In this document: piece after piece, positions 1 to 35,043 of the stretch
How positions within the stretch are numbered: position 1 is the first letter of the stretch
Layout: every line of letters starts with the position of its first letter
Assembly: GCF_001194135.2 (NCBI RefSeq)
Contig: NC_068984.1
Span: forward strand, 81,203,177-81,266,914
Source: Octopus bimaculoides
Taxonomy: Eukaryota
Direction: 5' to 3'
Length of the DNA stretch: 63,738 nt
Position numbers and translations under genes: made by a program
Notes under the pieces: model-generated
What the model was told of the DNA's origin: nothing
The model's input: the letters and a program-made list of their open reading frames with translations, nothing else
The model's database searches: none

Positions 1-298
1 ATATATATATATACACACACATATACATCTGTATGTATATATATACACGCACACACACACATATATCAAATGTTCATTCATACATTCAACATACCACATA
101 TGCAGCTAACTGTTTTTTTTATTATTCATTTTTTTTTTCAAAGGCACATTATTATCATCATCATCATCATCATTATTATTATTAATATTATTATTATTAC
201 TGTTATTCCAAAAGACCTGAGAGGTGAATGAGATAGATATAAAACAGAAAAACACTCAAAGTAGCTTGGCTTTTAGTTTTATAGCTTTGGAAAGTTGT

Positions 299-1114
299 TT
301 AGTGTTTCAGAGTCAAGCCAGAACTCACTGACGATGAAGACGGAGATTCATTTGCTTCGGTCAAATGTTCAGATAATCTAGAAACGGGGCTCTGTCTGGC
401 TGAAGAAGTGGGAGGTGGTGTGTTAGTGTGGGCGCTGATTACATTTGAGGAGGAACTCTGTGAAGGAAGCTGATGTGATTGCTGTGACGAAGATGATGAT
501 GATGATGGCGAGAGATGAGGGCTTGGATTGTCATTGTTGCAGTTGCTACTATTATTATTACTACCTCCACTATTACTGCTGCTACTACTACTACTACTAC
601 TACTACTAATAGTACAACTGCCACTACTACTTGTGTTATTGTTGGTGTTATTATTATTATTGTTATTACTACTATTGTTATTATTATTATTTGAACAACT
701 GGTAAAGTTTGAACCAGCTCCACTAATGGAAGAAGCACCGATAAATGTGCTTGATGTAATGATTGGAGAATTCGGTGAGTGCTGAGCAGTTGTTGACATT
801 AATTCAGTTTGTTGCTGGTGTTGTTGTTGTTGCTGCTGCTGCTGTTGTTGTTGTTGTTGTTGTTGCTGCTGCTGCTGCTGTCCTGTCTGAACAGAAAGCT
901 GGTTATTGGTGGGTGTGGTAGACCGAACCTGTGCTTGCGCCTGAGCCTGTGCTTGAGCCCACTTTGGTAAAATCCTTCGTCGTGCATTGGTGAACCAGTA
1001 GTTGATCTGATTGATGGTCAGACCGGTTTGCTTTATAAGCATGGCCTTCTCGTCATCATTGGGATAAGGGTTATCTTTATGATTTCGTAGCCATTCTAGC
1101 ATTATTGCCACAGC
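299..1114 (-). CDS. Terminal coding exon E: TALE homeodomain (helices 1-3) plus Q/N/S low-complexity tail
   Basis: Acceptor ttctcctttattgtAG|GCT GTG. It encodes [52 protein letters not shown], with the TALE three-residue loop before PYP and the WFxNxRRR helix 3. Stop TAA at 301-299. Confidence 0.95.
809..880 (-). repeat. Coding CAG/CAA repeat encoding Q20-H-Q3
   Basis: Read directly: 60 nt of mixed CAG/CAA, then CAC, then CAG CAA CAA. It is followed by AAT/AAC and AGT/AGC runs (poly-N, poly-S) at ~540-690. Confidence 0.95.
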
Positions 1115-1346
1115 CTACAATAAAGGAGAATAGCAATAAAGTCAGTTATCAATCATGGAAAATATCAAGAAAATGAAATAATTATACAAAAAAATAAACC
1201 CTAGAATTTACACATACAGAAAACTGCATTACAAGGTACTAACAGTGCACATATCAAAGATACACAATACTGCATTACACTCAGTTCTTTTGTGAATGCA
1301 TGCAATAAACATAACTGAAATAAATATTTCTAACATAGGAACAAGG

Positions 1347-1590
1347 GGAGGCGCAATGGCCCAGTGGTTAGGGCAGCAGACTCGCTTTCCAGACTGGGCG
1401 TTGTGAGTGTTTATTGAGCGAAACACCTAAGCTCCTGTTGTACTCTTTCGCCCCAACTTTCTCTCACTCTTTCTTCCTGTTTCTTGAGTAACGCTGCGAT
1501 GGACTGGCGTCCTGTCCAGCTGGTGGGAGCACATACGCTATAGAAACCGGGCCCATAAGCCTGGCTAGGTTTTGAAAGGGCGACGTTTAT
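1347..1590 (+). mobile_element. tRNA-derived SINE, internally deleted
   Basis: tRNA-like head GGAGGCGCAATGGCCCAGTGGTTAGGGCAGCAGACTC with an A-box; the B-box region is lost. The body is related to the copies at 11895 and 20495. Confidence 0.65.
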
Positions 1591-3824
1591 AGGAACAAGG
1601 ACAGAAATCTGGGGACAGCGGTTCAACTCCAGTACTTCATGGTACTTTATCTTAAAAGCTGTGGAAGGATGAAAGACACAGTTGACTTTATAGGGATTTG
1701 AACTCAGAATGTAAAAAAAATCAGAACAAATTCCACAAGGTATTTATTTATAGGTGCTTTAACAATTCTGTCAATCATCCCTCATTAAGATAACTAAAAA
1801 CTGTTGGTGGCACAAAAAAAGGTACCAAGTCCATGCTTTGAAATGGCTGGCATTAAGAAGGGCATTCAACTATAGAAACCATGCCATAGCAGACACTGGA
1901 GCATTATTCAGTTCTTGAATCCATCAGATCCTTGTCATACCAGCCAACTCATACCACCATGGAACATGGACACTAAATGATGATGAAAAATGATATGTAA
2001 CCTAGGCACAAGGCCAGAAATTTAGAAGAGAACACATTTGATCACTGCATTTAACCAGTAGTTATGTTATTTATCAACATTGGAAGGATGAAAGGAAAAG
2101 ATGATATCAGAAAGAAATGAACCCAGAATGTAAAGTAATGTAATGAGAACCACAAGGGAAATAGGTGGTGATAGGATTGACCATCAAGTTGTAGGAATCA
2201 TGTCTAAAAAAAACCCAAATAACGGAGAAGTGAACTCCATAAGCCACATTGTAATAGATAACAAAAAAGGCCAGCATATCCAAATAAAATCTTATACAAG
2301 GTAGTGAGGAGTGATTCAGTTTTTCCACAGAGAAATCTTCTTATCCTTGTGAAGTGGAAGAGACTTTTTGAAACTCATCCAACCAAAGCAAGCTTAGGAA
2401 AAAAGAATGTGAAAATGATAGCAATCGTTGTGATATTTTCTTCACCATAATTCCAATTTAGCTAATCTACCATCCTTTATGCCAGAGATACAGTATTTTT
2501 CTGTATTGTAAAAAAATCTTTAGTAATAATTTAGGCACAAGGGACCAGAATTTTGGTGGGGAGGAGAACTTTAATTTTATTGACCCTTGGAAGGATAAAG
2601 GTAAATCCTGATCTGGATTTGAACTAAAATGGAACAAATATTGTAAGGTGTTTTGTCCAATATTCTAACACTTCTTCCAATCCACAGCACTAATAATAAT
2701 AACAACAGCAGCAACAACAACAACAACAAGCTCATTTGATGTCTGTTCTTTCATGCTAGCTTCCGTTGGTTGAAGACTTATTACTGAGCCATTATTTTGC
2801 AGTTGGATTTTTACTTGTCACTAAAGCTTTCTTTTTATTTTTAAAGGATTTTTATTCTGCTTGTCTTTGAATAAGCAGAATTTTGGGGCATTATGTTGAC
2901 AGGGTGATTTCCACACACACACACACATGCGAGGACAAGTGGCTTCTATACCGGGACTGAACCTGGAACCATGTGGTTGTGAAACAAACTTCTTAACTGT
3001 ACAGCCATGCATAATGATGATTATTATTTCTAACATAAATAGAAGGCCAGAAATTTGAGGTATCTGTGACAGTCGATTATACTGAGTACAGTACTTGACA
3101 GGTACTTTATTTTATTGACACCTGGTGGGATTTGTGCAATAAGAACTGGAACAAATACTGCAAAGTATCCAATCCAATGCCATTACTACATATTTTCAAA
3201 GAAAAAATTGTCAATCTCACAAGTAGGCGAAAGTCTGTTTTAAAATAATTTTACATGCATGTAAAATTATTTTAATTTTGGTAATTTGTACAAATTTTCA
3301 TTTCTTCTTTACCCTTTGCTAACACTTCACATGAAATTTTTCTGTAACAAGGTCTAAAAAAAATTTGGATGCTTTCTCATGAATGTGAAGACGATGTATC
3401 AGTGTTTAACATCATCCAACTCTACCACACAAAAGATATATTGCTATTTATTCAGCTACATACACACATACAGATATATATATTTATACACACAAATAGC
3501 ATTCCAAGACTACCAAATTTCTTTGATTGAGTTATCATTATTCCCATTAGCTGTTAAATAAACAGGTGTATACCTCAATTACACTAGGTATTCATGAGAG
3601 ATGGCATGAGCTCAACAGGTGCAGTTTCCACTTAGCATTGGCAACTGATGGATGTAGATGATGGAGATATTTACACACACACACATACACACAACAATAT
3701 TAGATTCACAAATGAGTCAACTGCTAGTTGTTTATATAACACTTCTCTGTCCTTTATCTAAGATATTTATTTCTGTATGTTCCATATTGATGAAGAATCC
3801 AATAGAACTATTTATGTGACATAC

Positions 3825-3935
3825 CTCTTTAGGCAAACTAGGATGTTTCTTTGATTCTGATTTGGCACTATGGTTACTGCTACTGCTCACAACACTACCA
3901 GTGTCACTCATGCTGTCTGGTTGCTCTTTTAAAAC
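3825..3935 (-). CDS. Coding exon D (111 nt, phase 0/0): VLKEQPDSMSDTGSVVSSSSNHSAKSESKKHPSLPKE, including the homeodomain N-terminal arm
   Basis: Acceptor ttttttctctcttttgtAG, donor GAG|GTATGT. The end KKHPSLPKE aligns with the TALE arm (Meis KKRGIFPKV) and joins in frame to AVAIMLEWL. Confidence 0.9.
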
Positions 3936-5405
3936 CTACAAAAGAGAGAAAAAAACAAACAAAACATTTATATGAAAACAAACGGCCTGATAGCATGCTT
4001 TAGGTGAACTCTTTTTTTAGTCAGAGTTAAATTCAAATCAAAAAAAAGAAGTAAAATATTAATTACTAATTAAAGTTTACCATTGATTCGTGGCCAAGGC
4101 AACTTAAGAATAAACAACTCCAGCCATGGCAAGTCTTGAGAACACTTAAGTTTCAGAGAAGGAGGTGCAGACATACAAAATTTGTTTTCCTTGGAATCAC
4201 TCACTGCTTAAGGTCTGATTAGAATATTAATCATGAACAAACTAACCCAACCCATAATAGATAAAAAAAAAAAAAATTGTTTGTACTGCAAAAACTCTTG
4301 TACAAAGTGAGTGAATGGCCAAATTAAGAAATGAAAAATTCACTACACTGACCCAGTAATTATAACAACAGACAATTCTTCTTGCCTATGCTATCATTCA
4401 ACCAAACAATATTGTTGTAGATAGATAGATAGAAGCTAACTTTTGCAAAACTAAAAATAGTAAATGACAGACAAGTAAGATATGAAGCCAAATTGTGTAG
4501 AAATAAAATAAAATTAAAAAAAGCCAATTTTTTTTTCTCAAAATCAAAGAAACTGAACAGAAGTACAAAACCCCAAAGTCCAGTACCATGAATCCGTAAT
4601 TAACAAAATAACGAACTTAAACTTAAAACATGTTTTTCCAGATGTAAAACATCCATTAATGGTTTTTATTTAATAACTAAGACTGGGAACGGCCATTACC
4701 ATTTTTAGTGCCACTGAGACTGGTCATAAGAAGTTCAACCCAAAACATGAACACTTGCAACAAACAGGACTCTGTTTGAGGCATCTGTAAGCCAGTAGAT
4801 TTAGCAAAACAGAAATGGTTCTTTTGAAGAGTTTCCATAAAGTTCCTAGTTACCAAATTTTAACTATAAAAGTCAACCTGAAGAAGACACTTGTCTAAAA
4901 TGTTAAGTGGTGGGATTGAACCTGAAATCATGTGGTTACAAAGTGAACTTTAACCATAAAACTTTGCCTGCACCATAACAATAATTAATTGTAGTAACTC
5001 CCTCACTTTTGTTTTACTGTAAAATTTACCCGAAGTATTTTAAGCTACTCAATGGTGGTGCTCCAGCATGACCACGGTCACATGGCTGAAATGAGTAAAA
5101 GAGTATAAAATAGTAGGTTCTTTAGAGTTTAAATTAATGTTTATTCCCCACACACACACACACACACCCATAATTACCAGCTACAGAATAATCTTTTACT
5201 TAGTTAATAAAAAAAACATTATTGTCTTTACATTCTGAGTTCACATTCTGCCAAGGTCAACTTTGACTTTCATCCTTTCAAGTGAACACTGGGGTCAATG
5301 TAATTGATTTACTTCCCTTCCCTGAAATTGCTGGCCTTGTGCCAAAATTTGAAACTATGATTATCATTATTATAATGATTATTATTACTATTATTATTAT
5401 TATTT

Positions 5406-5608
5406 TAAGGTGGCAAGCTGGGAGAATCATTAGCACACTGGACAAAGTGATTAGCAATGTTTCATTCTGAGTTCAAATTCTGCAAAGGTTGGCTCTGCCT
5501 TTCATCCTTTCGGGGTTAATAAAGATAAGTACCAGTCAAACACTGGGGTCGATGCAATCAACTAGTCCCCTCCCCACAAATTTCAGGCCTTGTGCCTATA
5601 GTAGAAAG
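5406..5608 (+). mobile_element. tRNA-derived SINE (family with TTTCATCCTTTCGGGGT core, Nin/Deu-domain-like)
   Basis: TAAGGTGGCAAGCTGG...GAGTTCAAATTC...CCTTTCATCCTTTCGGGG...AAGTACCAG, followed by (ATT)n. Other copies or fragments lie at ~1590-1790, 2540-2690, 3030-3190, 5220-5360, 6810-6940, 40300-40460 and 48470-48620. Confidence 0.7.
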
Positions 5609-5609
5609 G

Positions 5610-5641
<32 letters not shown>

Positions 5642-5645
5642 ATAC

Positions 5646-5771
5646 CTCTAAAGGTAAACGAGGGCCTTTTGTTGGATCTGTCAAGAAAGCATTTCTGCAG
5701 AAAACCTGGTTACCACATGGTTGACCACTACTAGCTGAATTACCATGGATACAAGCTCCAGGATCCATTGA
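5646..5771 (-). CDS. Coding exon C (126 nt, phase 0/0): SMDPGACIHGNSASSGQPCGNQVFCRNAFLTDPTKGPRLPLE
   Basis: Strong acceptor ctctcattacttcctttctAG and donor GAG|GTATGT. It is an open 42-codon symmetric exon inside ORF 5583..5768, with higher GC than its flanks. There is no domain similarity, so support comes from splice signals and phase. Confidence 0.75.
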
Positions 5772-5872
5772 CTAGAAAGGAAGTAATGAGAGAATATTTA
5801 AAACCAAAATCTAAGTAACCAATTTCCAATAGCTCCCATGTTTCCTTGCTATCTTTGTGGAATACATATACA

Positions 5873-5915
<43 letters not shown>

Positions 5916-6168
5916 CCTCAAATATTCACAACGATTCACTGGATAACAAGCAACGTTTCAATTTTAGTCCTAAAAGCAAATGAATTATTTTCAAACTTTA
6001 AAATTGCTCTTTTCATTAATGCATATATGCTAAAAGAATGGAGCTAAATATATAATAAAATATTTTACTGGAAAACATATATATTCAGAAGTAATTAGAT
6101 TTACAATGCACAAAATTATTATTTTTAAATCAAACATTTCGGACACCATTAATTATATTTGTAATAAT

Positions 6169-6388
6169 ATTGGTTTCAAATTTTGGCACAGGGCCTGCAA
6201 TTTCTGAGAAGGGTGTAAGGTGATTGCATCTGCCACAGTACTCAAAAGGTACTTATTCTTTTGACCCTCAAAGGATGAAAGGCAAACTTCGACCTTGGCA
6301 GAATTTGAACTCAGAATGTAAAGACAGATGAAATGCCACTAAACATTTTACCTGGCATGCTAATGATTCTACCAACTCACCACCTTAA
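6169..6388 (-). mobile_element. Same SINE family, inverted relative to 5406-5608
   Basis: The reverse complement reads taaggtggtgagttggtagaatcattagc...ctgagttcaaattctgccaaggtc...tttcatcctttgagggtc. Confidence 0.7.
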
Positions 6389-6420
6389 TCATATTCATAG
6401 CATTAAATAGCATTCTTTTT

Positions 6421-6797
6421 TTTTATTCTTTTATTCTTTAACTTGTTTCAGTCATTTGGCTGCAGCCATGCTGGAGCACCACCTTTAGAACAAATCGCCC
6501 CCCGGACTTATTCTTTGTAAGGCTAGTACTTATTCTATCGGTCTCATTTGCTGGACCGCTAAGTAATGGGACGTAAACACACCAACATCAGTTGTTATGC
6601 GATGGTGGTGGTGGTGGTGGGGACAAACAGATACACACACACACATATATATATATATATATCAAATCCACTCCTAGTCTTTGGTCGGCCTGAGGCTATA
6701 GTAGAAGACATTTGCCCAAGGTGTCATGCAGTGGGGTTGAACCTGGGACCATGTGGTTGGGAAGCAAGCTTCTTACCACACAGCCACTCCTGCATGG
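6421..6797 (-). mobile_element. Abundant tRNA/CORE-like SINE (head GCAGGAGTGGCTGTGTGGTAAGAAGCTTGCTTCCCAACCACATGG), near full length
   Basis: Reverse complement of the family seen more than 15 times in the window. It has a CCTTGGGCAAxTGTCTT core, an internal (CA)/(TA) microsatellite and the 3' end ...GACTGAAACAAGTxAAAGAATAAAAG. Confidence 0.8.
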
Positions 6798-7429
6798 CTA
6801 AAATACATTTAGGAGAGGGTACAATCAATTTTGTCAACCTTGGAAGAATGAAAGCTAAATTCGACTCCAGTGAGATTTGAACTTAAACTATTAACGGATG
6901 TAACTAAATATTACATGTCTACTGCTCTACTAATTCTGCGTTTTACCACTTTTGTGTTAGATATAATATTAACCCTTTTGATACGAACCCCCTGAGACTG
7001 CCCCAGTATGTAGAGACCCCTTCCTTGACTTGTCAGTTATTCGATATAATACATATGCAAATACAGACACATATATCTGTCATAAGGTATGTTTCTCTAG
7101 TGCAAGCAGCTACCTTTAGAAGACTGTACCCCAGGTTGGCAGTTTTCAGAATTGAAGAGAGGCTTTCAAATGAAAACACCTTAAGATAAATACAGAAAGC
7201 AAGATAGAAATAAAGACAGAGAGGTAAGGAAGAGAGTGTAAAATATTAAGTTGCCAAATATTAATTATATCCAGATATAAGTTTCAGTAATTTTATCTTT
7301 CAAGTCTATTTAGGTATCTTACTGGTACTGAGAGCTGTTGCTAAAACAATTTCAACAGTAGCCTCAGGATATTTCCTGGGGCAATGAGAGAGGGGAGGAA
7401 AGGATAGATAGAGGAGAGAGAAGGAAAGG

Positions 7430-7468
<39 letters not shown>
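7430..7468. repeat. (GT)n microsatellite, representative of dozens of (CA)n/(TA)n/(GA)n/(CAT)n/(TAA)n tracts
   Basis: Read directly. Other examples are (TA)n at 5878-5911, 14487-14518, 26909-26943 and 36835-36882, and (CT)n(TA)n at 21700-21758 and 47367-47440. Confidence 0.95.
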
Positions 7469-7471
<3 letters not shown>

Positions 7472-9757
7472 TTTAAGCAGTTTGAATTTGTAAGGCCAGT
7501 TTGATTCTTGATTTCTCTTTACATACTCTCTCCTACTTCATAGTTGCCTGCAATCTTTTCTGATGGCAGACAATAGGTAATGAAGCCTACCAGGATGACT
7601 TCCTTTGGCACACTCAACTACATAAAGACAAAAGCCTTCAGTAATTAGCCACCCAGTGGCCCATTAAAGATGATTGCCAGATGTTTTCTATATCACACAC
7701 ACACACAAATAACAACTATTGTACATCCTTTCCCAATGATTGTATGGGTGAAATAAGTTTACTGGTTTGAACATTTGTGTTTCTTTTCCCCTCTACAGCT
7801 GAATGCTGTTCTTCCTACTGCTAGCCACTGAACTGTGAAGTAGGTTGTTTTCATTTATTTATTTATTTATCATCATCATCGGCAGCAGCAGCAGCAGCCA
7901 AGCAAACTACATTAAGCAGTAAACAGCTATTAGGTATCTGGTTTAGGTGTACAAAACAAGACAAATGCAATATCTGAACTGCTGGCTATGTGGTTTAGTG
8001 GGCTAACACTTTTAACCTCCATAGTCAAATATAAATGTTCTTACATTAATTACCATTTCAAGTCATTTTTCACAAAGCTCTTTAGTTTTAATTATGCAAA
8101 TTTCCCCTGGACAGAAATGTACTAAATAATTTTTTAACACATAAAAGTTTAAAAATTGATCTGGAGGCAACTTACAACTAAACTAATATGATGAGGTCAA
8201 ATTCATACTGAAACATAGTGTCCCTAGTCTCTAAACAAAGAACAGACTGCTCTTTTGTCCCCCAAATATGCTCATCCAATTAAGAATATATTTTTGATAT
8301 CTTCAAATTACCTCCCTTGCTAGTGGTTACTGTTGGAGGCCGTAGGCCGAATCTGGACCTGCAAACCTGAAATTTTGGATTCCCAAGTTTCCATAACTTG
8401 GAAATAAATTTTGGGAATAATTGAAATTAATTGCAAAATCCAGCGATTATTTTCAGCAATTTTTTTACTTGATTCTTTTTTTTTTGCGACGAATATGATC
8501 ATCATTGAGATTATATGTCTCTGGAGGAAACAATTGCAACAAATTCTCCAAAACAAATCAGAGATCTGTTTGCAGGTCTTCCCATTCAGGGCCAGTTACT
8601 TAAAAGCTATATACTAGCTTAAGAGTTACCCCATCGGGTGGCTTGTAAGCTAGAGAAAGTATATTAAGCACAAGTTTGTGTCATTTGGTCCCTATGCATG
8701 TTTCACTATTGTGGTTATTGTAACCTCTGAATTGCAATTGCATGCAAAATGACAACAGATCATCAGGGGAACACTTTGTTGCATTATGTTACGCAAGTCC
8801 AAAGCTTATATGTGTGTGTGCAAATGTATATGTCTTTGTCTGTAATTTCTCTCAGCTTGATAACCAGTATCTTAGTAAAAAGGAGCTAAGTCAATAAGCA
8901 CTAAACTTAAAAATTGGGGTTCAATTTGATTGAGTAAAACCTTCAAAGCAGTGCACCAGCATGGACACAGTCCAATGAATGAAAGATGTAAATGAGTATT
9001 AACACACACACACACACACACATTTATATATAGCTTCTATTTCTCTGTTAAAAAACAAAAAAGTAACTAAGAAAAATCTGCCAATCTCTGTCAATAAATA
9101 GTTACTTAGACTGACTTGGGCCATAAAATACCTTAATATAGATAATAAAAAAAATCCTTATGTGGGGGAGAATGGTAGCGGGGTAGTCTTCATTACACAA
9201 AACTAAAATCCATTAATTTATGTACAATGATAAGGAAAACAGCAGAACCATGCTGATAAAGTTACAAGGACTGTATATATATACACACACACTAGAACTT
9301 ATGCTTGTACCAAAATTACTCCCATAGGTCTTTAACAAAAAAGAAGAAAAAATGAAGAGGGAGGAGGAGGAACCAATAAGGGTTAGCAAAAGAATTCAGC
9401 TAGCAGAGTAAGGAAAATGTAGTTTATTCCTTTTCCTGATTATACAATTCTAGCCATAGTCATGTTGGCTTTGCCATGCAGCTAAGTTTTGTGTATTAAA
9501 TTTCAAGAACTCCTGTTCAGTATATTGCCTTGTTAACTAGTTGGCAGCAGTATCGGACCCTCTCTCTGTTACATGAGTTGCCAGAGATAAAACATGAACA
9601 ACAAAAGCCAGAATCAACATTTAAACACACAAATACATACATATACACACAAAGCAAAGCATAAAATAATGAGCCGATGAAGAAAGTTCTACATGTTCTC
9701 AGAGCCAGCTAGAAATACCAGCCAAATCACATCAAAATCACACTCAAGTGTCTTTAA

Positions 9758-9978
9758 CACTTTAGCATTCAAACTGGCCATATCTGGTCTAAATATTTTA
9801 TCTGTTTTACGTTCAAACCAACCGAATGCAACCTCTCACACTTATCCTACAATGTCCTTCTAAAAATAAGCCATCACATCATGAAAATCTCAAAGCTACC
9901 AGATGATGCATGATTAATTTAAAACAATGTGAATAAATAAGCATTAACACTTAACAGAATGATCTGAATGCTAAAGGG
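9758..9978. mobile_element. piggyBac-type MITE family 1 (~220 bp)
   Basis: TTAA|CACTTTAGCATT ... AATGCTAAAGGG|TTTA termini. The internal sequence is shared with 14765-14987, 24883-25103 and partial copies at 21043, 35642, ~37620-37730 and 43916. Confidence 0.75.
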
Positions 9979-10299
9979 TTTAAAAAGGGAGGAATACAGT
10001 AGATTATGCATTCTTAGATAAACTATACCCGAGAAAAAAAAAAGATTTTGTGATATTCATGTCTGTTGGAAGGGCATTAAAGATATGGTAATATCAGGGA
10101 ATTGAGTTAAGAATGTACCACTGCACCATAGCAGTAGCAGCATGAACTCTATGCAGTCACTTGATCTGCTAAAAACAGTAGCTAAATCTCCCTCAAATAA
10201 CACCCTCCTGTCTTAAGAGAAAATCAAAGATGTATTAGATAATATGATCTAGTAGAAGACACTTGCACAAAGTGCCACACAGTGGAACTGAACCTGGAA

Positions 10300-10458
10300 T
10301 ATTGACAACTTGATTATAGACACTGGCCTGGAATGTATCTAGGACCTTGAGGCAGTTATGATGGATCAAGAAGTGTGGCAGGCAGACTGTTACTGTGGCC
10401 CGGGTTGAAAACCGGCCATAATAATAATAATAATAATAATAATAATAGTAATAATAAT
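10300..10458 (+). mobile_element. 5'-truncated RTE-clade LINE 3' end with (TAA)n tail
   Basis: Translates DTGLECI*DLEAVMMDQEVWQ, resembling the RTE/RTEX C-terminal D.G....DL..AM.DR..WR motif, and ends in a (TAA)n run. Confidence 0.5.
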
Positions 10459-11894
10459 GCAGTGAAGAACAGAGACTTACAAGCCTTTGGCCATTGTGTA
10501 ACCTTACATTAAAATGCTTTTTATTTTATTTTATTTTTTAGCCATTAAAAAATGTGTTCTAACAAAGGTACAAAGTTACAAATGTTGGAAGGAGGAGGTA
10601 TAGGAATTTAATCAACCCTAGCACTGGATATGATAAAAGCAAACTCAAACCCAAATAGGATTTGACTCACAGCATCTTATCTGATGTCCAAATGATTTTA
10701 CATGTACTGTACAATGTTACACACACACACATAAACATAACATTATAGAGTGAAGAACTACCTTTGTATCTCTAATTATAATAAAGGCAAACAAGACATA
10801 GAGATTACCATCTCTATGTCTTTGACAATCAACTCAAAGATAAAGAGATGAAATTCCCAACAGGTATTTTGTTATGTCTACAGCAGGGAACTTCATTCTA
10901 CATGCCTTGATTCCCAGTTGTATAGAATTGGTAAAAATCATCAGGGAATACTACCGAGGTTGGAATGCAAAGAAAGTAGAGTAAAGACCAAACTTTTGAT
11001 GAACACTTTGGGACGTGCAAAAACGAATGCAATTTTACATTTATTAATTGGCTTCAAAGAGAGAGAACTGAAACAAAGTATCACAATTCTACATGTTGAA
11101 CCTTTCCAAAGGAAAAGCAACTCTAGTTGATAGTTTAAATCATGTTGAGTGTGAGAGAGAAAAATATGTTTAAGCAGAAACACACACAAACGCACGCAAG
11201 CAAGCACAGACACACACACGCACACAAATGCACATATTTACCAGTGTTTTAGATTAGATGAAAACCTTAAAATACTCATATCTGCTTCACTATCTTAATT
11301 CAATTCTACAATTTAAAAAAATAACTAAATAAAAAGTAAAATGAACAAACAAATGGTGACTGCTGTTGAAGATTATTCATAAGAATCAGAAAGATACAAG
11401 TTTAATACAACCTAATCACAGTTTCTGGTTCCTATTGTAAGAACTTGAGAAATGTAGAAAAAAAACCCAAAAAAATCTAGTGCTAAACTTCATAGCTATT
11501 CTTCAACAAATCTTTTCTCCCCCCCCCCCCTCAGTATTTCCCTCCTTGTTCACTTTTAAGGTTTGAAGAAAAAATATTTTGTCTTGTAATTTTGCAAATA
11601 CATTTTTTTTACTATATTTGAATTAATGAAGCGTATCAGAGATACTGTATCAGTTGACATATTCTGACAAATTCGAAATATGCCATTGTTAAATTACTTA
11701 TAATCAAATTACCAGTACAGATTGCTAACTTTTTGGAAATATTTTTGGCACTGGTAGTGTTTATAGTAATTTTTCTATTCTTCTTCAAAATATTTTCAGA
11801 GTAATACTTCATAATCATTTACAATCCAATATCTCCGATCAGTTTAGGTTAAAGATCATGATATTGAAGTAATCAAATATACCCTCTCAAATGT

Positions 11895-12150
11895 GGAGGT
11901 GCGTGGCTCAGTGGTTTGGGTGTTAGACTCCTGATTGTAAGATTGTGGTTTCGATTCCTTGACCGGGCGACACATTGTGTTCTTGAACTACACACTTCCT
12001 TTCTTATTGCTCCAGTCCACTCAGCTGGCAAAAATTAATTATCATGCAATGGACTGGCATCCCATCCAGGTGGGGAATATGTGTGTGCCATGAAACTAGG
12101 AAACCAGCCCTTATGAGTCAGTATGACTCGAGAAGGTAACTTTATCTTTT
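11895..12150 (+). mobile_element. tRNA-derived SINE
   Basis: GGAGGTGCGTGGCTCAGTGG (A-box) ... GGTTTCGATTCC (B-box), followed by a TGTGTTCTTGA core and a CTCCAGTCCACTCAGCTGGC body. Confidence 0.7.
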
Positions 12151-13467
12151 TACCTTACCCTCTCAAATGAAAGTCACAAGATTAGTATATCAGTTATAAT
12201 TTACTTGTAGAATATTCATTTAGCATATTCCAAATATCTTATTCTATTAGCTGAGAAGGAAAATCAAATATCAACAAAGGAAGTAGTTCAGCAGTAGTTC
12301 ACAATTAAGCTACTGATGATGATGATGTAGTTGGATAGATCCATTCAACTATAAATGGACAAGATATTTTCTATTTATATCCCTAGTAAAGGAGACTAGG
12401 TCTGGATGTGGCCTGAAAAAAAAATGAGATGCAAGGTAGGGTGTGGGTTTAAACCATTTACTACATTAAGTATTAAGTGGTAAAGATATACAGCTGTGGT
12501 AAACCATTCAGAAACTCCCTGGTCTCAGCATTTTTAGCCAATCCTTATCATCATCAATTTCATCTTATGTCTGCTATTCCAAGCTGGTTTGGGTTGATAT
12601 AGTAGTACCAGTAAGGCAGCATAGTGATTTTCATCAGCTATACCTGTTTCTTTCACAAAGAAAACACTTTTGGTTAGTTTAGTAAAAAAAAAAATATATA
12701 TATCATTTATTGTTTTAATTAATAATTCCTGTATTTCTTATGGTATTTACTCTTTTTGTTTGTTTTCTGTTTTGTTTCATACCATGAACCCTTTTTGTGA
12801 CTGCTGAAAGCTGGAGAGCTCTTATCAAGAAATACGTGTTTGAAAAGTTCAGAGTTTTTGTACTTGTTCTAACAAGTGATTTGATTTGAGACCATGTGGT
12901 GAAATTAAAGCTATTACAGCATGGAAGACACATATTAACCATTCAAAAACACAGAAACTGTTAACTTCACTTCATCGTTTATTATTTGGTGTCAAAATTT
13001 TCGTTGCACAGTCTGCAACCCAGTCACTGATACAGTTTTACTACACATTTAAAAATAGTCAATTTAATAAGTCTTTTTACCTTTGTTTGTGTAGGTAGAC
13101 TAGAGGCCATAAAATAGTTTGTGACCTACATCAAAATACTGAATAAAATAATTTTAGTTACATAGTAGTGAAAATAATGTAGTTTTCTCTATCCAAAGTT
13201 CACGCACCTCTGTAAATGAGCTTGCTCTAAAGGTTCCATTCATTAAAGGAAATAAATATCTGAATAGATTCTTAAAGATTTTCAGCTGGATTATTTTACA
13301 AAGCTTTTAGTCTAATACTACATTAAATAACAAATGAAACTGATATTAATTCTTCTCACCATAGCAGGCTGATTAATTATTATTGATGCCCACTCTTGTT
13401 AGATTAACTTTTAAGGAAATATATATAAAAGCAGGGATGACATATAGTAAAAGCATATCTATCTATA

Positions 13468-13830
13468 GGGGTAGGCTTGGCAATGCAATTAAAAAGTTTG
13501 CTTCCCAACTATGTGGTGTTGGGTTCAGTTTCACTGCAGGACACATTGGGCAAGTGTCTTCTAATATAGCCAAGTGCAAACCAAAGCCTTGGGAGGATCT
13601 GGTAGATGGAAACTGAAATAAGCCCATTGTGTATGCATGTGTGTGAATGTTGTTTGTCCCCTACCACTGCTTGACAACTGGTGTGTTGGTCTGTTTAAGC
13701 CCTTGCAGCTTACTGATTCAGCAAAAGAGACCAACAGAACAAGAACTGGGCTTAAAAAATAAGTACTGGGGTCAATTTGTTTGACCAAATCCTTAAAGGC
13801 AAAGTCTAATGACTGAAACAAGTAAAAGAT
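13468..13830 (+). mobile_element. Abundant tRNA/CORE-like SINE copy
   Basis: Collinear with 43494-43850 and 54580-54957. Confidence 0.75.
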
Positions 13831-13990
13831 ATATATATAGACATATAAGTAGGTTTTTTTTTTCTCTTTTTGGCATAACCGTATGTGTGTGTGTGTGTAT
13901 TCTTCTGCAATGCTGGATTGACAAAAAATCAAAAACACAGGTGTGAGAATCAAAGAGTAATAGAAAACTTTTTCTTTTTGCTATACTTAC

Positions 13991-14100
13991 AGCATTATGT
14001 TTTGATCGGTCAAATTTTTCACAGAATTCTTCTATAGCAGTTATAGACTGTGATGCTCCTTTGATACGTTTATCCTGCTCCTGCTTGCTTCGAATTTTTT
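13991..14100 (-). CDS. Coding exon B (110 nt, phase 1 to 0): (E)[36 protein letters not shown]
   Basis: Acceptor tcttctttttatccaactAG, donor GCT|GTAAGT. It completes the split codon G+AA (Glu). IEEFCEKF resembles the Meis HM2 end (CDNFCHRY). Too short for the ORF track. Confidence 0.88.
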
Positions 14101-14482
14101 CTAGTTGGATAAAAAGAAGATAAAAAGGAAATTAGAACCATAAAAAACAATTATAATAATCACTCACACACACAAAGAATTATATATATATAATAATAAT
14201 AATATTAGGGATAAAATCCAAAATTACAGGTAAAAACTCAATTAAAATCAATTTATTAAAAATTAAAATCAAATTAAGCTTCACAGTATAAAATATAAAT
14301 ATATAGTATTAGGGAAAAGAACCAAGGTTCATGAACTCATCGATGAAAATCCACTGTCATATATAGAAAAAATTTATAATTAAAAGTCCAATAAATAAGT
14401 ATAATATAATACAAAGTAAATATCATAAGATCAAGATAATACTTTTCCCTAATACTATATATTTATATATACTTTTCCCTAA

Positions 14483-14520
<38 letters not shown>

Positions 14521-14764
14521 CATCATCATCGTCGTTTAACGTCCACTTTCCATGCTGGTGGCAAACCAGAAGGCTGCACTACGCTCCAATCTGATCTGGC
14601 AAAGTTTCTACATATATATAGATAAATACAGTAACACAGATTGTTGTTAGTACAGCATAGATGTAAAAGGTAATGGATAGAAACTTGGTCTACAGATAAT
14701 CAAGTGATTAATGTTTGCTGTCGTTCAACCACAGGTCAGCCTTGATAAGGCAACCTATGATCAA

Positions 14765-14987
14765 CTCTTTAGCATCCCGATTACCCTGTCAAATGTAATG
14801 CTTATTTATTCAAATTGCTTTGAATTAATCATGCATTATCATACATTATCCCACAGCTTTTGATGATGCGATTGTTTATATTTAGAATGACATTGTAGGA
14901 TAGGTGTGAGAGACTGGATCTGTCCAGTTTTAACATAAAACAGGTAGAACATTTAAGTCACATATAGCCAGTTTAAATGCCAAAGGA
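14765..14987. mobile_element. piggyBac-type MITE family 1
   Basis: CTCTTTAGCAT ... ATGCCAAAGGA|TTAA; opposite orientation to the 9758 copy. Confidence 0.7.
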
Positions 14988-17900
14988 TTAAAAGACACTC
15001 AAACTATGACAACTCCCCAATTTCTCTTTCAAATACAATATTTTTAAAATCACATGAGCTAGTCTTCTCTTTTTTAAAACAGCAAGTTGTGGTTTGAAAG
15101 AAATTTGGTTGGTATTTCTAGCAAGCTGATTGACCATGTAAGTGTTTCCTTGTTAGTTATTGGTACATTACTATTACAGTCATGGAAAAACAACAAAACG
15201 CACACAAAAAACTATTACATAGCAGACATCATCATCATCATCATTTAACATAAATCTTCTATGCTGGTATTTGTTGAATGTTTTAATGGGAGCTAGCAAG
15301 CAAGAGGACTGCACCAAGATCCACTTGTCTGTTTGGCCTGATTTTTATAGCTGAATGCCCTTCCTAACACCAACCACTTAACTGACGCAGCACAAAATTC
15401 TTATTTATATTTAAATACAACCTTGCACTCGAAAATAATAAAACAATCTGTTCTAACAAAACACTGCACTTCTCTAAGTAGTTGTTGAGTAGTCTCATTA
15501 ATTACTTCACATTATGATTCCTCCTGCTAACCATTATTTAGAATCATTATTCTCCAATCAGGCTTTCTGCTTCTGATATTATCCAACCTTTCTGCAAGCT
15601 AAACAAAACCACAAAACCTACTCGTAATTATTTAAGACAGTCTGTGTTTCACTTCGCACTTATACTTGCAATCACCATATTAAACATATGACTCATAGAA
15701 GGACTAAACAATTCTATTAAATACGCACACAAACACTTGTGTGTGTGTGTGTACATTATATACACAATACATACGCACACACACACACACACACGTGAAT
15801 TTGTATATATGTATGTACATGTGTGTGTGTAAACATATATACACAATTCGCACACACACATACATAAATAAATGTGAATCTCTATATTTGTATACGTGTG
15901 TGTGTGTATTTATGCATGGTGAATTTATTTATCTATCTTACATACACACACACACACCAACACAGAAGACTGAAGATGGCAACACATTACACTGAGAGCT
16001 CATGAAGTTCTCATAATATCCATAAGGCATTAAAAAGAAAAAGCTTGTTCATATTTATTTTTCCAATGGGCAGTTCCACAAGCGTAGCAGTATACAAAGC
16101 CATGTCTGTGTGAGTGCAAGCAAGCATGTATGTATGTGTGTGTCTGAGGGCAGGGCACTACTCTGGTTTAGGTCAGCGTTGATCCAGCAGTCAAACCAAG
16201 GGTCAAAACATTTCCTTGATGATTATATTTATTTTTAAAAGCATAATGTAGCCATGGCATTTAAAAAAAATTTTTATGAAGGCAAAATATGATTACAGGG
16301 GGATTTGGCTACTATTTCTAGCAATTTGAAAGAATGTGTCAGGAATTCCTCACTGCCTTTTCCTCTCTATTTATACATGGGTGTGGTATATCAAGTTAAA
16401 GTTGGTGGCAGCAATGTCATCCCATCCACTGAGGATTTTCATGTGATGCACCATATCACATATACAGAAAACCTGCAGCTTTTCTTCTCTTCATAGTCTT
16501 AACCCTATTTTAATTAATTCTGTAAACAATGCTTTAGTCATTCGTATATTAAAAAAAAAAAAAAAAAAAAGGCTATCCCAAAGGTGATATGTGATTTCAT
16601 GAAAGAAAAAAAATCTCTTAATGTATTTATATTTTAATGTGTGTTCAGAGAGATTCTATTAAAATAAATAATTTGCCCATATCACTGTTGGTACATGTAC
16701 TAACTATTAGCATGTTATGTTGATGGGAAACATTGTAATACAAAGCATTAATTTACAAAAAACTCCAAATGTAAAAACATATGGAAATAAATTTTATAAA
16801 CAAGAATAAAAAAAAATGTTTTAGTTTTTGTTTTTGTTTCTAAAGTAGAGTGGTGTGTCTGTATCCTGTTAATAGTAAATACAATCAGCTGGGAGTTTTT
16901 AACCTTTTACACTGTTATAAAATTCTAACATACTAAAAGATGCTGTTCGCAAATCTAATTAAGTGTACTACGGATGATGTTCAAGGGTCTGTCTTCTCTA
17001 TTCTGGCAGCTTGATGTGTAAAAATAAAAAAATTTTAAGATTAAAAAAAAATACCTGGTTGTTTAGAAGGATGCTGAGTGGTGGAATAACTGAAGGGAAG
17101 TCTTTTGTGAATGGTAGTTGTTTGATTTAATTGTGCAGATTTTTGGCATATTGTTGCCTGAAGCAAATGACTTGGTGTGATTTGCATATCTTTTGTTTCA
17201 GATATACTATTCCCTTGTTAAACATAAGGACCATACAACACTCTGGGACAAGCAGAGCTTAATCATTTAGAGTGCTGTGTTGCAATCGAGACATTTATGT
17301 AACTCTGATAATACAATATAGAGTGCAGCACTACAGTCTGAGCAGAGCACTGTGTTGGAATCTGGACATATACATAACTATTTTTTCAGATATACTAGGT
17401 TGTTGCTGAACTTCAGACCTTACTGCAATCTCTGACATGAAGTAGTTCATTGTGGCATTGTATAAATGTTGTACTCTAACAAGTATTAGCTGTTATGCCA
17501 TCACACAACCTGCTAGAAATACCAGTCAATTACTCATCTATTTTGGTGCTTTGCATCAAAAGGGTGGATTACAGTATTTCATGCTGTCCTTCAAAATTTT
17601 AATTTCAAATCTGCTAGTCTAGTGCTGTTGTGACTTTTTACATCTATAGGAGTCTATACAATAAACTTGTGTCATCAAATTAATTGACTTAGCACCCGCT
17701 TCAGTTTTGTGCCATTACTCTTAAGGAATATTGTGTTGCTGAAGACTGATTCTCTGGATTCACTTGTTTCAATCCTCTTGGAAGATAATGTCACAATTAG
17801 GCCTTGTGTAATAAGGAAGGCTGATGTTTGCTTGACAGGAGGTGACATGAATATTTGCAGCTGATGAAGCCAAAACTCAGAAGTCTAGATCCAGCAACTC

Positions 17901-20494
17901 CATCATCAATGCTGGCCAAGCTTGCTGCTGATATTCTTCAGTTTTCTTTTTTTTTTTAATACTATACAAGATACTTTCTCAAGATGAATACTGCAGTTTA
18001 GAAGGCTTTCAACAGATGCATACTTAAAGAATGTACACAGATCACTAATTCTGAACTAATATTGCTTCTGTCGCTAACAACGAATTTCTGTTCAGGTGCC
18101 AGTTAAATGCGACATCACTGAATTTTAAATCATTGTTTAATCAAATCAGCCAGCAGCTGATGTTCATTTAACACGAGGTGATGTGGATATTTGTTGGTGA
18201 TGAAGCTAACAAGCAGAAATCTAGATCTAGCAATTTCAACCCCAATGTTAGCCAACCTTTGCTTGGTGCCGCTATTATTTTTCTGTGTTTTTTTAACACT
18301 CCACTTCTATAAGAGACACTTTCTCAAGACAAATACCGCACTTTAGAAGACTTTCAACACACACACACACACACACACGTTAAATACATATACAGATTGT
18401 TAATTTTTAATATAATTCTTGTTGAAACATCCAAGAAAATATTGCAAGTGAGAGATGTAAATTACAGAAGAAAGCAGTATATTTTTTAATTATACATTTT
18501 AAACATTACTATTTTTACTATTTTACATGAATATTTCAGTTTGTAGACAACATTAAAAAATATCAATATGAATTAAGTATCGGATGAAGAGTTGATTCAA
18601 TTTAATTTCGGAATTTTTTTTTTTTTAAACAAAAGCAATTATTTACTACTTGATCAATATAGATTATGAATAAATTGGAATCTTGCCTCCCAAACAAACC
18701 ACGCATGAAGTTAAGCTGAAACATAAAACCAATGATTATTGTTAAGCACAACATTAAATTAAAAATACAAAAAAAAAAAAAAAATGGATAACACTATAAA
18801 AATTAATCTCAAAATCAGTTTTCTAAAAAAAAAAAAAAAGCTTCGTTCAATTCAAACCTATTCAAACTGATACAAAAACATTTTGAGAGAGAGAGAGAAA
18901 GAAAGAGGGTTCCCCTATCATCACACATTTCACTGCACCAAGGTTAGAGGTAAACTCCTAATTAACGATAACAATAATAATAATAATAATAATAACAACA
19001 ACACTCCACCACCATCACCACCACACTCCATGTAATCTTATAACTTAACATAGACATCCAGTAAAATTTCAATTGAAAACTCTATAATTTTACAAGCTGC
19101 CAAACTGAAGCAAAAAGCTAGTCAGGCAAGACCAAACCAGCTAGGAAAACCAATAAAGAACAAAAAGTACAAACAAATAAATAAACAAAAAAAATAAACA
19201 ATCACCCATGTTACTGCCATAAATGCATACATACATAAAATAAAAATAAAAACAACGCTCTGCTTTCTATTCGCTTCTGACTCCCTAAACCAACTTTAAA
19301 TTTATCTGAGATGTTAAAAGGTTAAGCTTATGTGTTATACCATCTATCATAACAAATACAAGAATGACAGCCAGGAAGTCCAACCTTTAATATTTACAAT
19401 TCTGAAAACTGAAAAAACAACAAGTATTATAATAGGTTACAAAAAGAAAAAAAAAAAAAAAGAAAAGAAAAGAAAAACAACAAAAAATGTGAGGGTGGAG
19501 GGGGACTAAAGGGCAACAGCATGGATGGATGGTATTGTTAGGGTATTGGTTTCTAGTAACACCTCTTATCCCAAGCACAACCTACATCCCACATGCATAT
19601 AAAAGAAACATTACTTGGCTGACAGCTAACACCAGGAGAGAGAGAGAGAGAGAGAGAGAGAGTAAAGAAACAAGAGGATAACCAATGACCCTCACTATGT
19701 ACATCTTTAGTGATTTAGTGATAGGTTCATCATCCCAGGTTAGAAAAAAAAAAGAGCTAGAACTAAAATTAGTTAAAAAAAAAAAGTTGGCCCAAGAAAG
19801 ATTTGAACTTGCAATATAGAGATAAGTAAATGGTTAGTCTGTATCACTCCATAAGGAGCATAGGGCTAGTTTCTTGGTTTCTCTGCTGTATATATTCCTC
19901 CCTGGATGGGACACGGGTCTGTCACAGGATTACTCATTTTTGCCAGCTGGGTGGATTGGAGCAACATAAAATGAAATCTTTGCTCAAGAATACAACACAC
20001 TGTCCAATCCAGGAATCGAAACCAAAATCTTATGGTAATCAGTCCAACATCCTAACAACTAAGCCATGAATTTAGTTTAGTGCTTGCTCTACTAGACTTA
20101 AATACTTCATTCAAGAACAGTTTCTAATACAGAAACCAGATCACTCACTAGCCAGCCAGTGTGAAAGAAACTTGCAAGAAATGAGAAAAGCATGACTGTA
20201 ATATAAATCTCATTTCCTCTCCCTTATAAATCTTGAGGTCTTGTGCTGCTGAGGCAGCTATCATTTAAAGGAATACTAGCCAAAATTTAGAATTTGAGAC
20301 ATAAATTAGATATGTAAATTACTTATAATCCCCAAAATACTGAATGCGCTTTCAAAACTTATAGGAAACCTGTCAACTTCAGACATGGAAACACATATTC
20401 AAAATGTTATTCTTACCAGTCTCAGAATGCTATTTTCTCAACGATTTCAGAAATTATATAACACACACACACACGCACACACACACAAATGTGA

Positions 20495-20818
20495 AGGTGC
20501 ATAGCTTAGTGTTTAGGGTATTCAGCCTACAATTGTAAGGTTGTGAGTTCAATTCCTGGCGATTCTTTGTGTCCTTGAGCAAGACACTTTATTTCCTGTT
20601 GCTCTAGTCCACTCAGCTAACAAAAATTAATAGTACCTGTATTTCAAAGGGCCAGCCTTGTCACACTCTGTATCACACTGAGTCTCCCTGAGAATTATGT
20701 TAAGGGTACATGTGTCTGTGGAGTGCTCAACCATTTGCATGTTAATTTCATGAGCAGACTGTTCCATTGATTGAATCAACAGGAACTCTTGTCGTCGAAA
20801 CCGACTGAGTACCCAGTA
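20495..20818 (+). mobile_element. tRNA-derived SINE, near full length
   Basis: A/B-box-like head (GCATAGCTTAGTG...GAGTTCAATTCC) and a GTGTCCTTGAGCAAGACACTT core. Confidence 0.7.
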
Positions 20819-21695
20819 CCTATATAAATACTTATATAAAATGAAAATGATCTTTTATTTCTATCCCTAAACTATCCAAACAACAGCAATTTAAGCAGGA
20901 ATGACAATCCTCTATCCCAAAATGTATTTATCTAAATCATACATTCAATTTATCAATGACAACTTGAACCCAAGACAGCATGGTTGGGAAGCAAGCTTCT
21001 TAGTCACATAGCTACAGCACATCTTTTAACAATGAATATTAACCCTTTTGCATTCAGATTATTTTGTCAAATGTAGTGTTTATTTATTTGCATTGCTCTG
21101 AATGAATCATACATGATCTTATAGCTTTGAGATTTCAACGACGTGATTGTTTATTTCACAACCATCGGAGCATGAAGCACTCTTCATGACCACAAGTTCA
21201 TAAGATGGTTCTGGAAAGAGAAGTATGAACACACAATGTGCATGTGCACACTGCATTAAAAAAATGGAAGAGGAGAATAAAAAACATAATGCGCCTATCA
21301 AAATAAAATGTAACGTCAAACAAATTGGTCTGCATGCCACGTGTGACACCATTATCATGCAGCTTTGCTACAATTTTCTTGTTCTTAGAATGACATTGTA
21401 TGATCTGTGTAAGAGGCCACATCTGGCTGGCAGTTTAAAGGCTAAATTGTACAACAGTTATACAGTTGCCATTAATATAGATAATAATAGTAAAGTAGCA
21501 TGAGAGAAATGCAAGATTCCATACAATGCTTAGTCATACCCCTTCATTTTCTGAATTCAAATGCTGCTGAGTAAATTACACTTTTGCCTTCTCTCCTTCT
21601 AGGGCTGACAAAATACCAACCAGTCAATTATTTGCAATGCTTTAATCAACAAAATTTTCCTTTCTTACAAAGTTATCTCCTTATCCCAAAGTTAG

Positions 21696-21759
<64 letters not shown>

Positions 21760-22084
21760 CACCAACAGCATTATATAATTATTTAGAACCAACAGATCAA
21801 CATAACTATACATTTACTGTTAGGGTGCATAACATTTGTGAAAATTATAAGAAATTGAATATGCTGTAATGGTTTTTCTTTCTATAATTTTTTCCTTAAA
21901 ACATATCCATTTCCGGATATGACTTGCTGTGTCTGCAACAAGGCCTTGAGTAGTTTCTTAAATAACATCTAAGATTTCTAAAGGAAAGGGAAATGAGAGT
22001 TTATGACATTCATGCCTTTTCCAGTAATTATTGGAAAACTTAACCTACAGTTCATCTCTTACCAAATGGCATCCAGTGCCAACA

Positions 22085-22307
22085 TTAAACATTTTGATAC
22101 CAGTCTGCCTGAATCTGAGCTTGGTTCTATGATAAAACTTTCTGTTTTAAATTGATTTAAATTAAAACCTATCATCATGTTAATTTGTATTCCAAATATC
22201 AGCTTAATAACGACAAAGTGATTCTAATAATTTCTTCATTATTCTAAGAATTAATTGAAAGAAAGGTAGTAATATTTCAATGTAAATATGGTAACAAAAG
22301 GGTTCAA
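22085..22307. mobile_element. piggyBac-type MITE family 2
   Basis: TTAAACATTTTGATAC ... GTAACAAAAGGGTTCAA termini. Related copies lie at 6969-7004 (fragment) and 24043-24270. Confidence 0.6.
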
Positions 22308-23534: not shown

Positions 23535-23586
<52 letters not shown>

Positions 23587-23734
23587 GGGGGCTGTTTAGG
23601 CCAATGGTAAGAAATCAGGAAAGGAAATAATTAAATGTAAATGAGAACACACACACACACACACACACAGAAAGGTAACTAAAACCAAAAAAAGTGGTGA
23701 ATGCAAGAGAAAGATGGTCATAGATAGACACACT

Positions 23735-23767
<33 letters not shown>

Positions 23768-24882: not shown

Positions 24883-25103
24883 CCCTTTACCATTTAAACC
24901 GGCCGCATCAGGCCCAAATGTTCTACCTGTTTTATATTCAAACTGGTGAGATCCAGACTCTCACACCTACCCTGCAATGTCATTCTAAACAATAAACAGT
25001 CATACCATTGAAATCTCAAAGCTACAAGATAATGCATAATTAATTCAAAATAATGTGAATAAATAAGCATTGCATTCGACAGAGTAATCTGAATGCTAAT
25101 GGG
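24883..25103. mobile_element. piggyBac-type MITE family 1, intact with TTAA on both sides
   Basis: TTAA(24879-82)|CCCTTTACCATT ... AATGCTAATGGG|TTAA(25104-07). Confidence 0.8.
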
Positions 25104-26905: not shown

Positions 26906-26954
<49 letters not shown>

Positions 26955-34941: not shown

Positions 34942-35043
34942 AAACAGAAAAAAATTTTTCTTCATGTTGTAAAGAAGTAGAACAAGGAGTTGAGCAAAGT
35001 TGTTCTTCAGAAAGTGAGGGCTACATACAAGTAATGAAAATAT

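Follow-up and report, generated by a model that had tools for sequence, protein, structure and literature searches.

We analysed a 63,738-nucleotide stretch of the Octopus bimaculoides genome (contig NC_068984.1; this whole stretch is called the window below) that contains a gene for a homeodomain protein of the TALE superclass. The gene lies on the minus strand and has at least five coding exons (A to E) spanning 31761..299. Joined at AG and GT sites throughout, the exons form one uninterrupted frame of 4,245 nt (1,414 codons). As judged from its sequence, the homeodomain is a cephalopod member of the already named TALE-I family, with Y47 and T50 as family signatures. We put the probability at about 85% that the window holds most of the cephalopod TALE-I orthologue as an intact, spliced gene.

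The homeodomain comprises 63 residues and is spliced from two minus-strand exons. Positions 1–11 (ESKKHPSLPKE; 3857..3825) form the end of exon D and positions 12–63, with helices 1–3 (1114..959), the start of exon E. The intron between them has canonical GT/AG sites and is in phase 0 at both junctions: exon D (3935..3825) translates as VLKEQPDSMSDTGSVVSSSSNHSAKSESKKHPSLPKE and is followed by a GTATGT donor at 3825, and the acceptor side of exon E reads ...TATTGTAG (…tattgtag), with coding sequence from 1114. The spliced domain shows the features of the TALE superclass, namely a match to Pfam Homeobox_KN (PF05920, E = 3.6e-19), a three-residue insertion between helix 1 and helix 2, and the sequence ...HKDNPYPN... 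with its PYP. Its nearest solved structures are PKNOX1 (top), TGIF1 and MEIS1/2 (E = 1e-15 to 1e-14). An AlphaFold2 model gave a block-mean predicted local distance difference test (pLDDT) score of 89–96 over most of the domain and ∼75 over the last residues.

We checked the residue numbering against Antp and Meis within a published 63-column alignment. This places H5 at codon 3845..3843, Y47 at codon 1000..998 (TAC) and T50 at codon 991..989 (ACC), all on the minus strand. The preliminary description of this DNA had reported an unusual homeodomain with these three residues, and it is real. W48, F49, N51 and R53 and the PYP loop are retained as described there, and R54 and R55 are kept as well. 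The residues cited for comparison (I50 in Meis, Pknox and Tgif, G50 in Pbx, A50 in Irx and Mkx, and R5 with N47 in Meis) all hold in the published alignment. That description had found the two homeodomain exons correctly and had overlooked a MEINOX-like domain encoded upstream, which we describe below.

A first protein search returned the recognition helix unchanged in Elysia, Dreissena and Nucella and in dozens of open reading frame (ORF) fragments. Because the same helix recurs in dozens of independent database proteins, the homeodomain is not a chance find. We traced the family by searching supplementary alignments for YWFTNARRR. Paps et al. 2015 (PMC5322547) had named it "TALE Clade I", with Cgi_TALE2 (CGI_10008335) as founding member and 99% support, had given its distribution as "Trochozoa" and had counted it as one of the novel clades specific to lophotrochozoans. 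It was later renamed "TALE-I" (Barton-Owen et al. 2018, PMC6118893). The window homeodomain is one residue apart from that of oyster Cgi_TALE2 (Cg_LTCI_TALE2; 62/63 identical). The TALE-I members of the published alignment come from bivalves, limpets, Lingula and four annelids, with no cephalopod among them. Since the earlier surveys had no cephalopod TALE-I, this locus adds a new member to a known family.

Identity of the window homeodomain to published TALE-I homeodomains ranges from 72 to 98%, with a mean of 83% over eight members. It falls to 46–54% for Tgif, Pknox and Meis, 35–38% for Irx, 29–32% for Mkx and Pbx, and 24–38% for the SPILE-type spiralian clades. The preliminary description had proposed a TALE family separate from Meis, Pknox and Tgif and had suggested a homeodomain phylogeny with the TALE classes, SPILE clades included. 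In such a tree, built by neighbour-joining (NJ) with 300 bootstraps, the window homeodomain fell inside the TALE-I clade (81% bootstrap). Support for grouping TALE-I with Pknox was 0%, with Meis 0.3%, with Meis and Pknox together 2.3%, and with Tgif 4%. The Meis clade (99–100%) and the Tgif clade (93–94%) were both recovered with the window homeodomain outside them. The family is therefore separate, as proposed. That it is poorly characterised is borne out by the names of its orthologues, which are uninformative or wrong; that it was unrecognised is not, given its naming in 2015 and 2018.

The window shares with published TALE-I members the signature helix, the PYPNDDEK loop and the intron after LPKE. 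Y47 and T50 occur together in 111 of the 127 family homeodomains retrieved, and the recognition-helix signature is identical in the window. Position 5 is more variable. H5 is found in molluscs, in Lingula and in the animal of contig L001. Annelids carry N5 or K5 instead, N5 also occurs in Priapulus, and decapods show still other residues, so H5 does not characterise the family as a whole. R5 is present in none of the TALE-I members examined. Decapod members also vary in the recognition helix, with Q47 or H47 and T50 or I50.

We identified the upstream coding sequence by tblastn with Meis, Pknox and mollusc fragments. Exon A (31761..28680, minus strand, 3,082 nt) lies in an ORF at 31836..28636, starts LMEYRD with an ATG at 31758, and is bounded by the acceptor ttctatttcag and a GTAAGT donor in phase 1. 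Exon A codes for extended stretches of low complexity, among which short motifs are conserved, and for part 1 of the MEINOX-like domain. An acidic N-terminal motif, EEMDDERLPNELLEEICEDMGIKDSMDIDLIDYMM (31543..31647, minus strand), is conserved across species: it is found in the window, in the cephalopod protein P0120, in Biomphalaria, Mizuhopecten, Patella, a bivalve and Owenia, and on contig L001. MEYRD, DDERLPNELLEEICEDMGIKDSM and ESPLDQGYF are among the further islands of conservation in this long N-terminal portion. Exon B (14100..13991, minus strand; sites ccaactag and GTAAGT) restores the frame from phase 1, encodes the second part of the MEINOX-like domain and matches the Nucella protein P0003. 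Exon C (5771..5646, minus strand; canonical sites, phase 0/0) encodes a linker (SMDPGACIHGNSASSGQPCGNQVFCRNAFLTDPTKGPRLPLE) and was found by tblastn with residues 1036–1078 of P0120 (E = 2e-12).

The remaining two exons carry the homeodomain. Exon D, defined by its splice sites on the minus strand, encodes a serine-rich linker before the first homeodomain residues. The intron that follows LPKE occupies the same position in L001 and is implied by many genomic ORF fragments that start ...QAVA; in contigs L001 and L002 the exons break at the points seen in the window, ...LI|G and LPKE|. Exon E (1114..299, minus strand) is an open frame that continues past the homeodomain into a C-terminal extension (958..299) and runs to a stop codon at 301..299. 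This tail contains (AQ)n, a run of ∼24 Q, and Ser/Asn-rich poly-N and poly-S, encoded by CAG/CAA and AAC/AGC repeats. The extension was seen in cephalopods only, P0120 having a comparable one; gastropod and bivalve proteins end ...PKWAQ(Q)CK(T), 4–6 residues past PKW.

Transcript evidence comes from a relative. P0120, obtained from a profile search, is a complete ORF of 1,315 residues with the same architecture and 63% identity to the window model. The collection indexes its source, transcript contigs of 5–6 kb, in 106 blocks; those displayed are Logan assemblies of SRA runs. The TALE-I orthologue is thus transcribed in a related cephalopod. When a P0120-type cDNA was aligned to the window it matched in pieces, with breaks exactly at the predicted exon junctions; coverage was 31762 to 28680 for exon A, 14101..13997 for exon B and 5761..5667 for exon C. 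An exact look-up of the large ORF of the window in the contig collection returned nothing on record.

The MEINOX-like domain (N-domain hereafter) is divided between exons A and B. At ∼70 residues from the end of exon A it reads DKSSAYRSHPLFPLLRDLMITYMNF...AVESVIMDALRYAHSSLI, and it continues in exon B with EKIR.... Its first part (RPPMLSSQ...AHSSLI) maps to 28974..28681 on the minus strand, and its core, AYRSHPLFPLLRDL, contains HPLFPLLRDL at 28899..28870. We searched a profile of the N-domain (A1) against 1.84 billion representative proteins. At E ≤ 1e-3 the search retrieved 111 proteins, of which 43 reached E ≤ 1e-30; a AFRSHPLFPLLRDLIIAD-type core is present in nearly all of them. A word-indexed protein search with a 30-sequence N-domain alignment returned 25 short fragments and no new taxa.

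We then compared profiles with hhalign, using 30 diverse N-domains (A2) and a small alignment of Meis/Pknox HM domains (A3). A3 consisted of P0101 and five other sequences. Four of these five (all but MEIS2) were scanned against Pfam Meis_PKNOX_N (PF16493) and matched at E = 1e-49 to 1e-62; P0101 matched at E = 6.8e-10. The N-domain aligned with the Meis/Pknox HM domain over 102 collinear columns with a probability of 90.2% (E = 1.5e-6, score 41.0), whereas 30 column-shuffled and two reversed controls scored no higher than 15.5, with probabilities of at most 0.7%. The alignment pairs HPLFPLL with HPLFPLL, VIMDAL..AH with LMIQAIQVLRFH, and EEFC.KF of exon B with ELCDNFCHRY of the Meis HM domain. 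AlphaFold2 predicted the N-domain to be all-helical (block-mean pLDDT mostly 62–84, with one 10-residue block at 54) and the linker to be disordered. From these comparisons, we conclude that the N-domain is a divergent MEINOX/HM domain, distantly homologous to those of Meis and Pknox; what is proposed is relatedness to the MEIS class, not membership in it.

In PREP1, both PBX1 binding and nuclear import depend on L63, L66, L67 and L70 of HR1 and on I122, L125, L129 and L132 of HR2 (Bruckmann et al., PMC7545097). The four HR1 leucines of PREP1 map directly onto leucines of HPLFPLLRDL. Because of the distant HM homology and the conservation of all four HR1 leucines, it is plausible that the MEINOX-like domain mediates heterodimerisation, with Pbx as the most plausible partner.

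Most of the relatives stem from ENA, JGI or Logan assemblies; names are attached to only ∼15 of the N-domain matches, and the species distribution given here rests on these. The two-domain protein was found in Biomphalaria, Mizuhopecten, Patella, Owenia and the priapulid Priapulus caudatus (XP_014666189.1), and in the decapods Penaeus, Panulirus, Cherax, Procambarus and Homarus; the Petrolisthes match shows the N-domain only. The window and Priapulus align in both domains, which follow one another in the same order: the N-domains are 34% identical over 136 residues (E = 8e-24) and the homeodomains 61% identical over 59 residues (E = 3e-22). The N-domain is also retained in the decapod members. 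It is because of the N-domain and the shared architecture that we count Priapulus and the decapods as TALE-I. The same architecture in Priapulus and in decapod crustaceans means that TALE-I is not lophotrochozoan-specific. The survey that defined the family included one ecdysozoan genome; apart from PADRE in TALE Clades VI–VII, it described no large domain accompanying the homeodomains of the novel clades (PMC5322547). A survey of decapod TALE genes reported six classical subclasses only (PMC5968366). A literature search, itself incomplete, found no paper on a MEINOX-like domain in TALE-I or on ecdysozoan members.

Several public records carry wrong names (P0119, P0121, P0122/P0237, P0181 and P0222). 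The Biomphalaria protein is called 'trithorax group protein osa', the Mizuhopecten protein 'TGIF2LX' (UniRef) and the Patella protein 'protein split ends'. NCBI names the decapod members 'Meis1-like', and other orthologues are listed as 'uncharacterized protein'. Low-complexity regions may lie behind the wrong names.

Taken together, these results suggest the following picture. The product is predicted to be a nuclear, sequence-specific transcription factor of at least 1,414 residues. It consists of an acidic N-terminal motif, ∼900 low-complexity residues with conserved islands, the MEINOX-like domain, a disordered linker, the homeodomain and a Q/S/N-rich tail. The homeodomain is predicted to recognise a TGAC-type core; the residues at positions 47 and 50 and an arm without R5 would then shift the flanking-base preference or the affinity, and the MEINOX-like domain is predicted to support heterodimerisation, most plausibly with Pbx. 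Earlier descriptions of TALE-I covered only the homeodomain and treated the family as a lophotrochozoan novelty without a companion domain and with the distribution Trochozoa; here it gains a MEINOX-like domain, relatives in Priapulus and decapods, and a long Q/S/N-rich tail in cephalopods. More tentatively, and with less than even confidence, we suggest that TALE-I may be a third ancient MEINOX-bearing TALE family, a paralogue of Meis and Pknox that is at least protostome-wide and that model ecdysozoans and vertebrates have either lost or still contain unnoticed. Its members might partner Pbx through the HR1-like helix, and their Y47/T50 helix without R5 might give Pbx complexes a binding preference that Meis and Pknox do not provide. 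If the MEINOX-like domain and the wider distribution hold up, the protostome Meis/Pknox–Pbx cofactor system gains a third, unstudied member, and the label "novel lophotrochozoan gene" would be wrong for TALE-I. The homeodomain finding by itself is routine annotation; the architecture and the distribution are modestly novel leads.

A number of results weigh against this picture. Pfam Meis_PKNOX_N did not match the N-domain of the window, P0091, P0092 or P0095 at E ≤ 10, and the weak profile matches that we checked contained no Pfam Meis_PKNOX_N domain. None of the inspected matches to the N-domain profile was a bona fide Meis or Pknox protein, so the MEINOX homology depends on one profile-profile comparison. 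Part of the hhalign score is due to the short HPLFPLL motif, and for the HR2 contact residues of PREP1 the alignment is ambiguous. In the homeodomain-only NJ analysis, Priapulus joined TALE-I in about one third of the replicates and the placement of the decapods was unresolved. Finally, the first coding exon (MAV...NSFSM in relatives) was not found upstream of 31761 by sensitive tblastn, regular-expression search or blastn with the cDNA, and the first 48 codons of the transcript of the relative have no counterpart in the window. On the strand of the gene, exon A is preceded at a distance of ∼2.5 kb by an assembly gap (a run of N at 34290–34965). This gap may contain the missing exon, which might otherwise be outside the window or too diverged to be found.

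The absence of the first coding exon, together with the gap at ∼34.3–34.96 kb, is also what would speak for a pseudogene, or for a homeodomain that is a chance pair of ORFs. Against this stand the open frame of 4,245 nt over five exons with canonical splice sites, a homeodomain nearly identical to that of the oyster, and the transcription of the orthologue in a related cephalopod; it is the least probable of the alternatives that we considered. Membership in the spiralian-specific TALE expansion (SPILE and related clades), as a young and fast-evolving lophotrochozoan novelty, would fit the original listing of the family as lophotrochozoan-specific with the distribution 'Trochozoa' (PMC5322547). 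Like TALE-I, the spiralian clades II–XIX are TALE-class and were first described from spiralians. They differ in having W(F/L/M)(A/S/G)NKRNR-type helices, and many are fast-evolving or carry two homeodomains or a PADRE domain. The window homeodomain shares only 24–38% identity with SPILE-type domains, has a helix of the NARRR type, which Meis, Pknox, Tgif, Irx and Mkx also show, and not NKRNR, and is extremely conserved, not fast-evolving, and the N-domain and homeodomain architecture recurs in Priapulus caudatus and in decapods. In the NJ trees, SPILE sequences grouped with clade II–VIII sequences, apart from TALE-I. We therefore regard such membership as very unlikely, and the relation to SPILE, which had been left open before, as largely answered. 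A divergent cephalopod Pknox/Prep or Meis orthologue, with positions 5, 47 and 50 altered by lineage-specific drift, is slightly less plausible still. In its favour are PKNOX1 as the top match among solved structures, the HPLFPLL and ...EFC.KF... elements shared by the N-domain and the Meis/Pknox HM domain, and the 'Meis1-like' names that NCBI gives to decapod members. The likeness to PKNOX/PREP (PKNOX1, PDB 1x2n) extends to NARRRIL, to a helical N-domain opening (Y)RxHPLFPLL with the four PBX-contact leucines of HR1, and to the domain order; MEIS/Homothorax shares the two-domain layout, and its ELCDNFCHRY is mirrored by EEFCEKFDR in the window. However, Pknox has I50, N47 and R5 where the window has T50, Y47 and H5, its homeodomain is 46–54% identical, HR2 is only loosely alignable, and the window protein is ∼3 times longer and is not matched by Meis_PKNOX_N. 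The Meis homeodomain is 48% identical and differs at the same three positions. Y47 and T50 are conserved from molluscs to Priapulus, and bootstrap support for a grouping with Meis or Pknox is 0–2%. In the published alignment, canonical Pknox, Meis and Tgif genes (I50, R5) coexist with a TALE-I gene in oyster, limpet, Lingula and annelids; since the same species hold all three, TALE-I is not their orthologue. TGIF (TGIF1, PDB 6fqp) resembles the window in its LPKEAV start of helix 1, its RRRILP end and the retention of R53, R54 and R55 (46–49% identity), but it has I50, N47 and an RRRR arm (RRRGNLPK) in place of T50 and the KKHPSLPK arm, and it is without a MEINOX-like domain.

With the locus read as a cephalopod TALE-I gene, the DNA that its product would bind can be considered. 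In homeodomains, the residues at positions 47 and 50 point into the major groove. The preliminary description had favoured a motif other than TGACAG, and a new specificity with a core other than TGAC(A), brought about by Y47, T50 and the loss of R5, is indeed possible, though we would not give it even odds. Y47 and T50 are strictly conserved (111 of 127 members), which implies selection and argues that these residues matter, and R5 occurs in no member. T50 also lies outside the set of I, A and G at position 50 that is regarded as diagnostic of TALE genes (PMC5322547). On the other side, N51, R53, R54 and R55 are invariant, and some decapod members have reverted to I50, with Q47 or H47. In the TGIF1–DNA structure, the base contacts to TGACA come from R220 and R221 (positions 54 and 55), R219 (position 53) contacts a phosphate, and I216 (position 50) makes only a water-mediated backbone contact; replacing the minor-groove arm residues (R167A/R168A) shifts the dissociation constant only about twofold (PMC6158717). 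Because N51, R53, R54 and R55 are kept, a TGAC-type core is expected, and its retention with an altered flank preference appears at least as likely as a wholly new motif, and in our view somewhat more so.

Some minor observations concern the homeodomain in other sequences. L001 (10001–10642) and L002 (ENA ERZ26052378), and also P0098 and P0100, have an extra conserved motif after the TALE-I homeodomain. It reads PKWRLQRILEEQA...(E/Q)DP(N/T/S)KV(K/R)VTGSAQEIRAIT.ELLQGRTV, and it is absent in molluscs and Owenia. Short AT-rich eukaryotic proteins (P0103/P0105/P0106, whole-genome shotgun project JFJP01; P0210/P0249, 'MAG: Paramarteilia canceri') combine (E/H)(Y/H)P(L/Y)F.LL with a T50 TALE homeodomain of the NWFTNARSR type. 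The Paramarteilia canceri assembly is attributed to a rhizarian crab parasite, and contamination or a wider distribution is possible.

Other observations concern the non-coding parts of the window. An Rfam scan of 1..6000 gave only matches far under the gathering scores, sitting on simple repeats. Inside the homeodomain intron, a stretch at ∼1340–1600 (GGGGAGGCGCAATGGCCCAGTGGTTAGGGCAGC...) looks by eye like a tRNA or a short interspersed element (SINE) and occurs once in the window; neither ARAGORN nor Rfam made a call on its tRNA-like portion (∼1340–1400). Upstream of the gene, the ORFs 36328..36774 and 51950..52372 were considered as transposase remnants and rejected, as they had no Pfam match. 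The ORF remnants at 36152–36774 and 51769–52372 (minus strand) share KDELKARI(M/I)AAFTNLNK and ...SDKNQT(S/F)SQ(H/Y)H..., and this similarity suggests that they are copies of an interspersed repeat.

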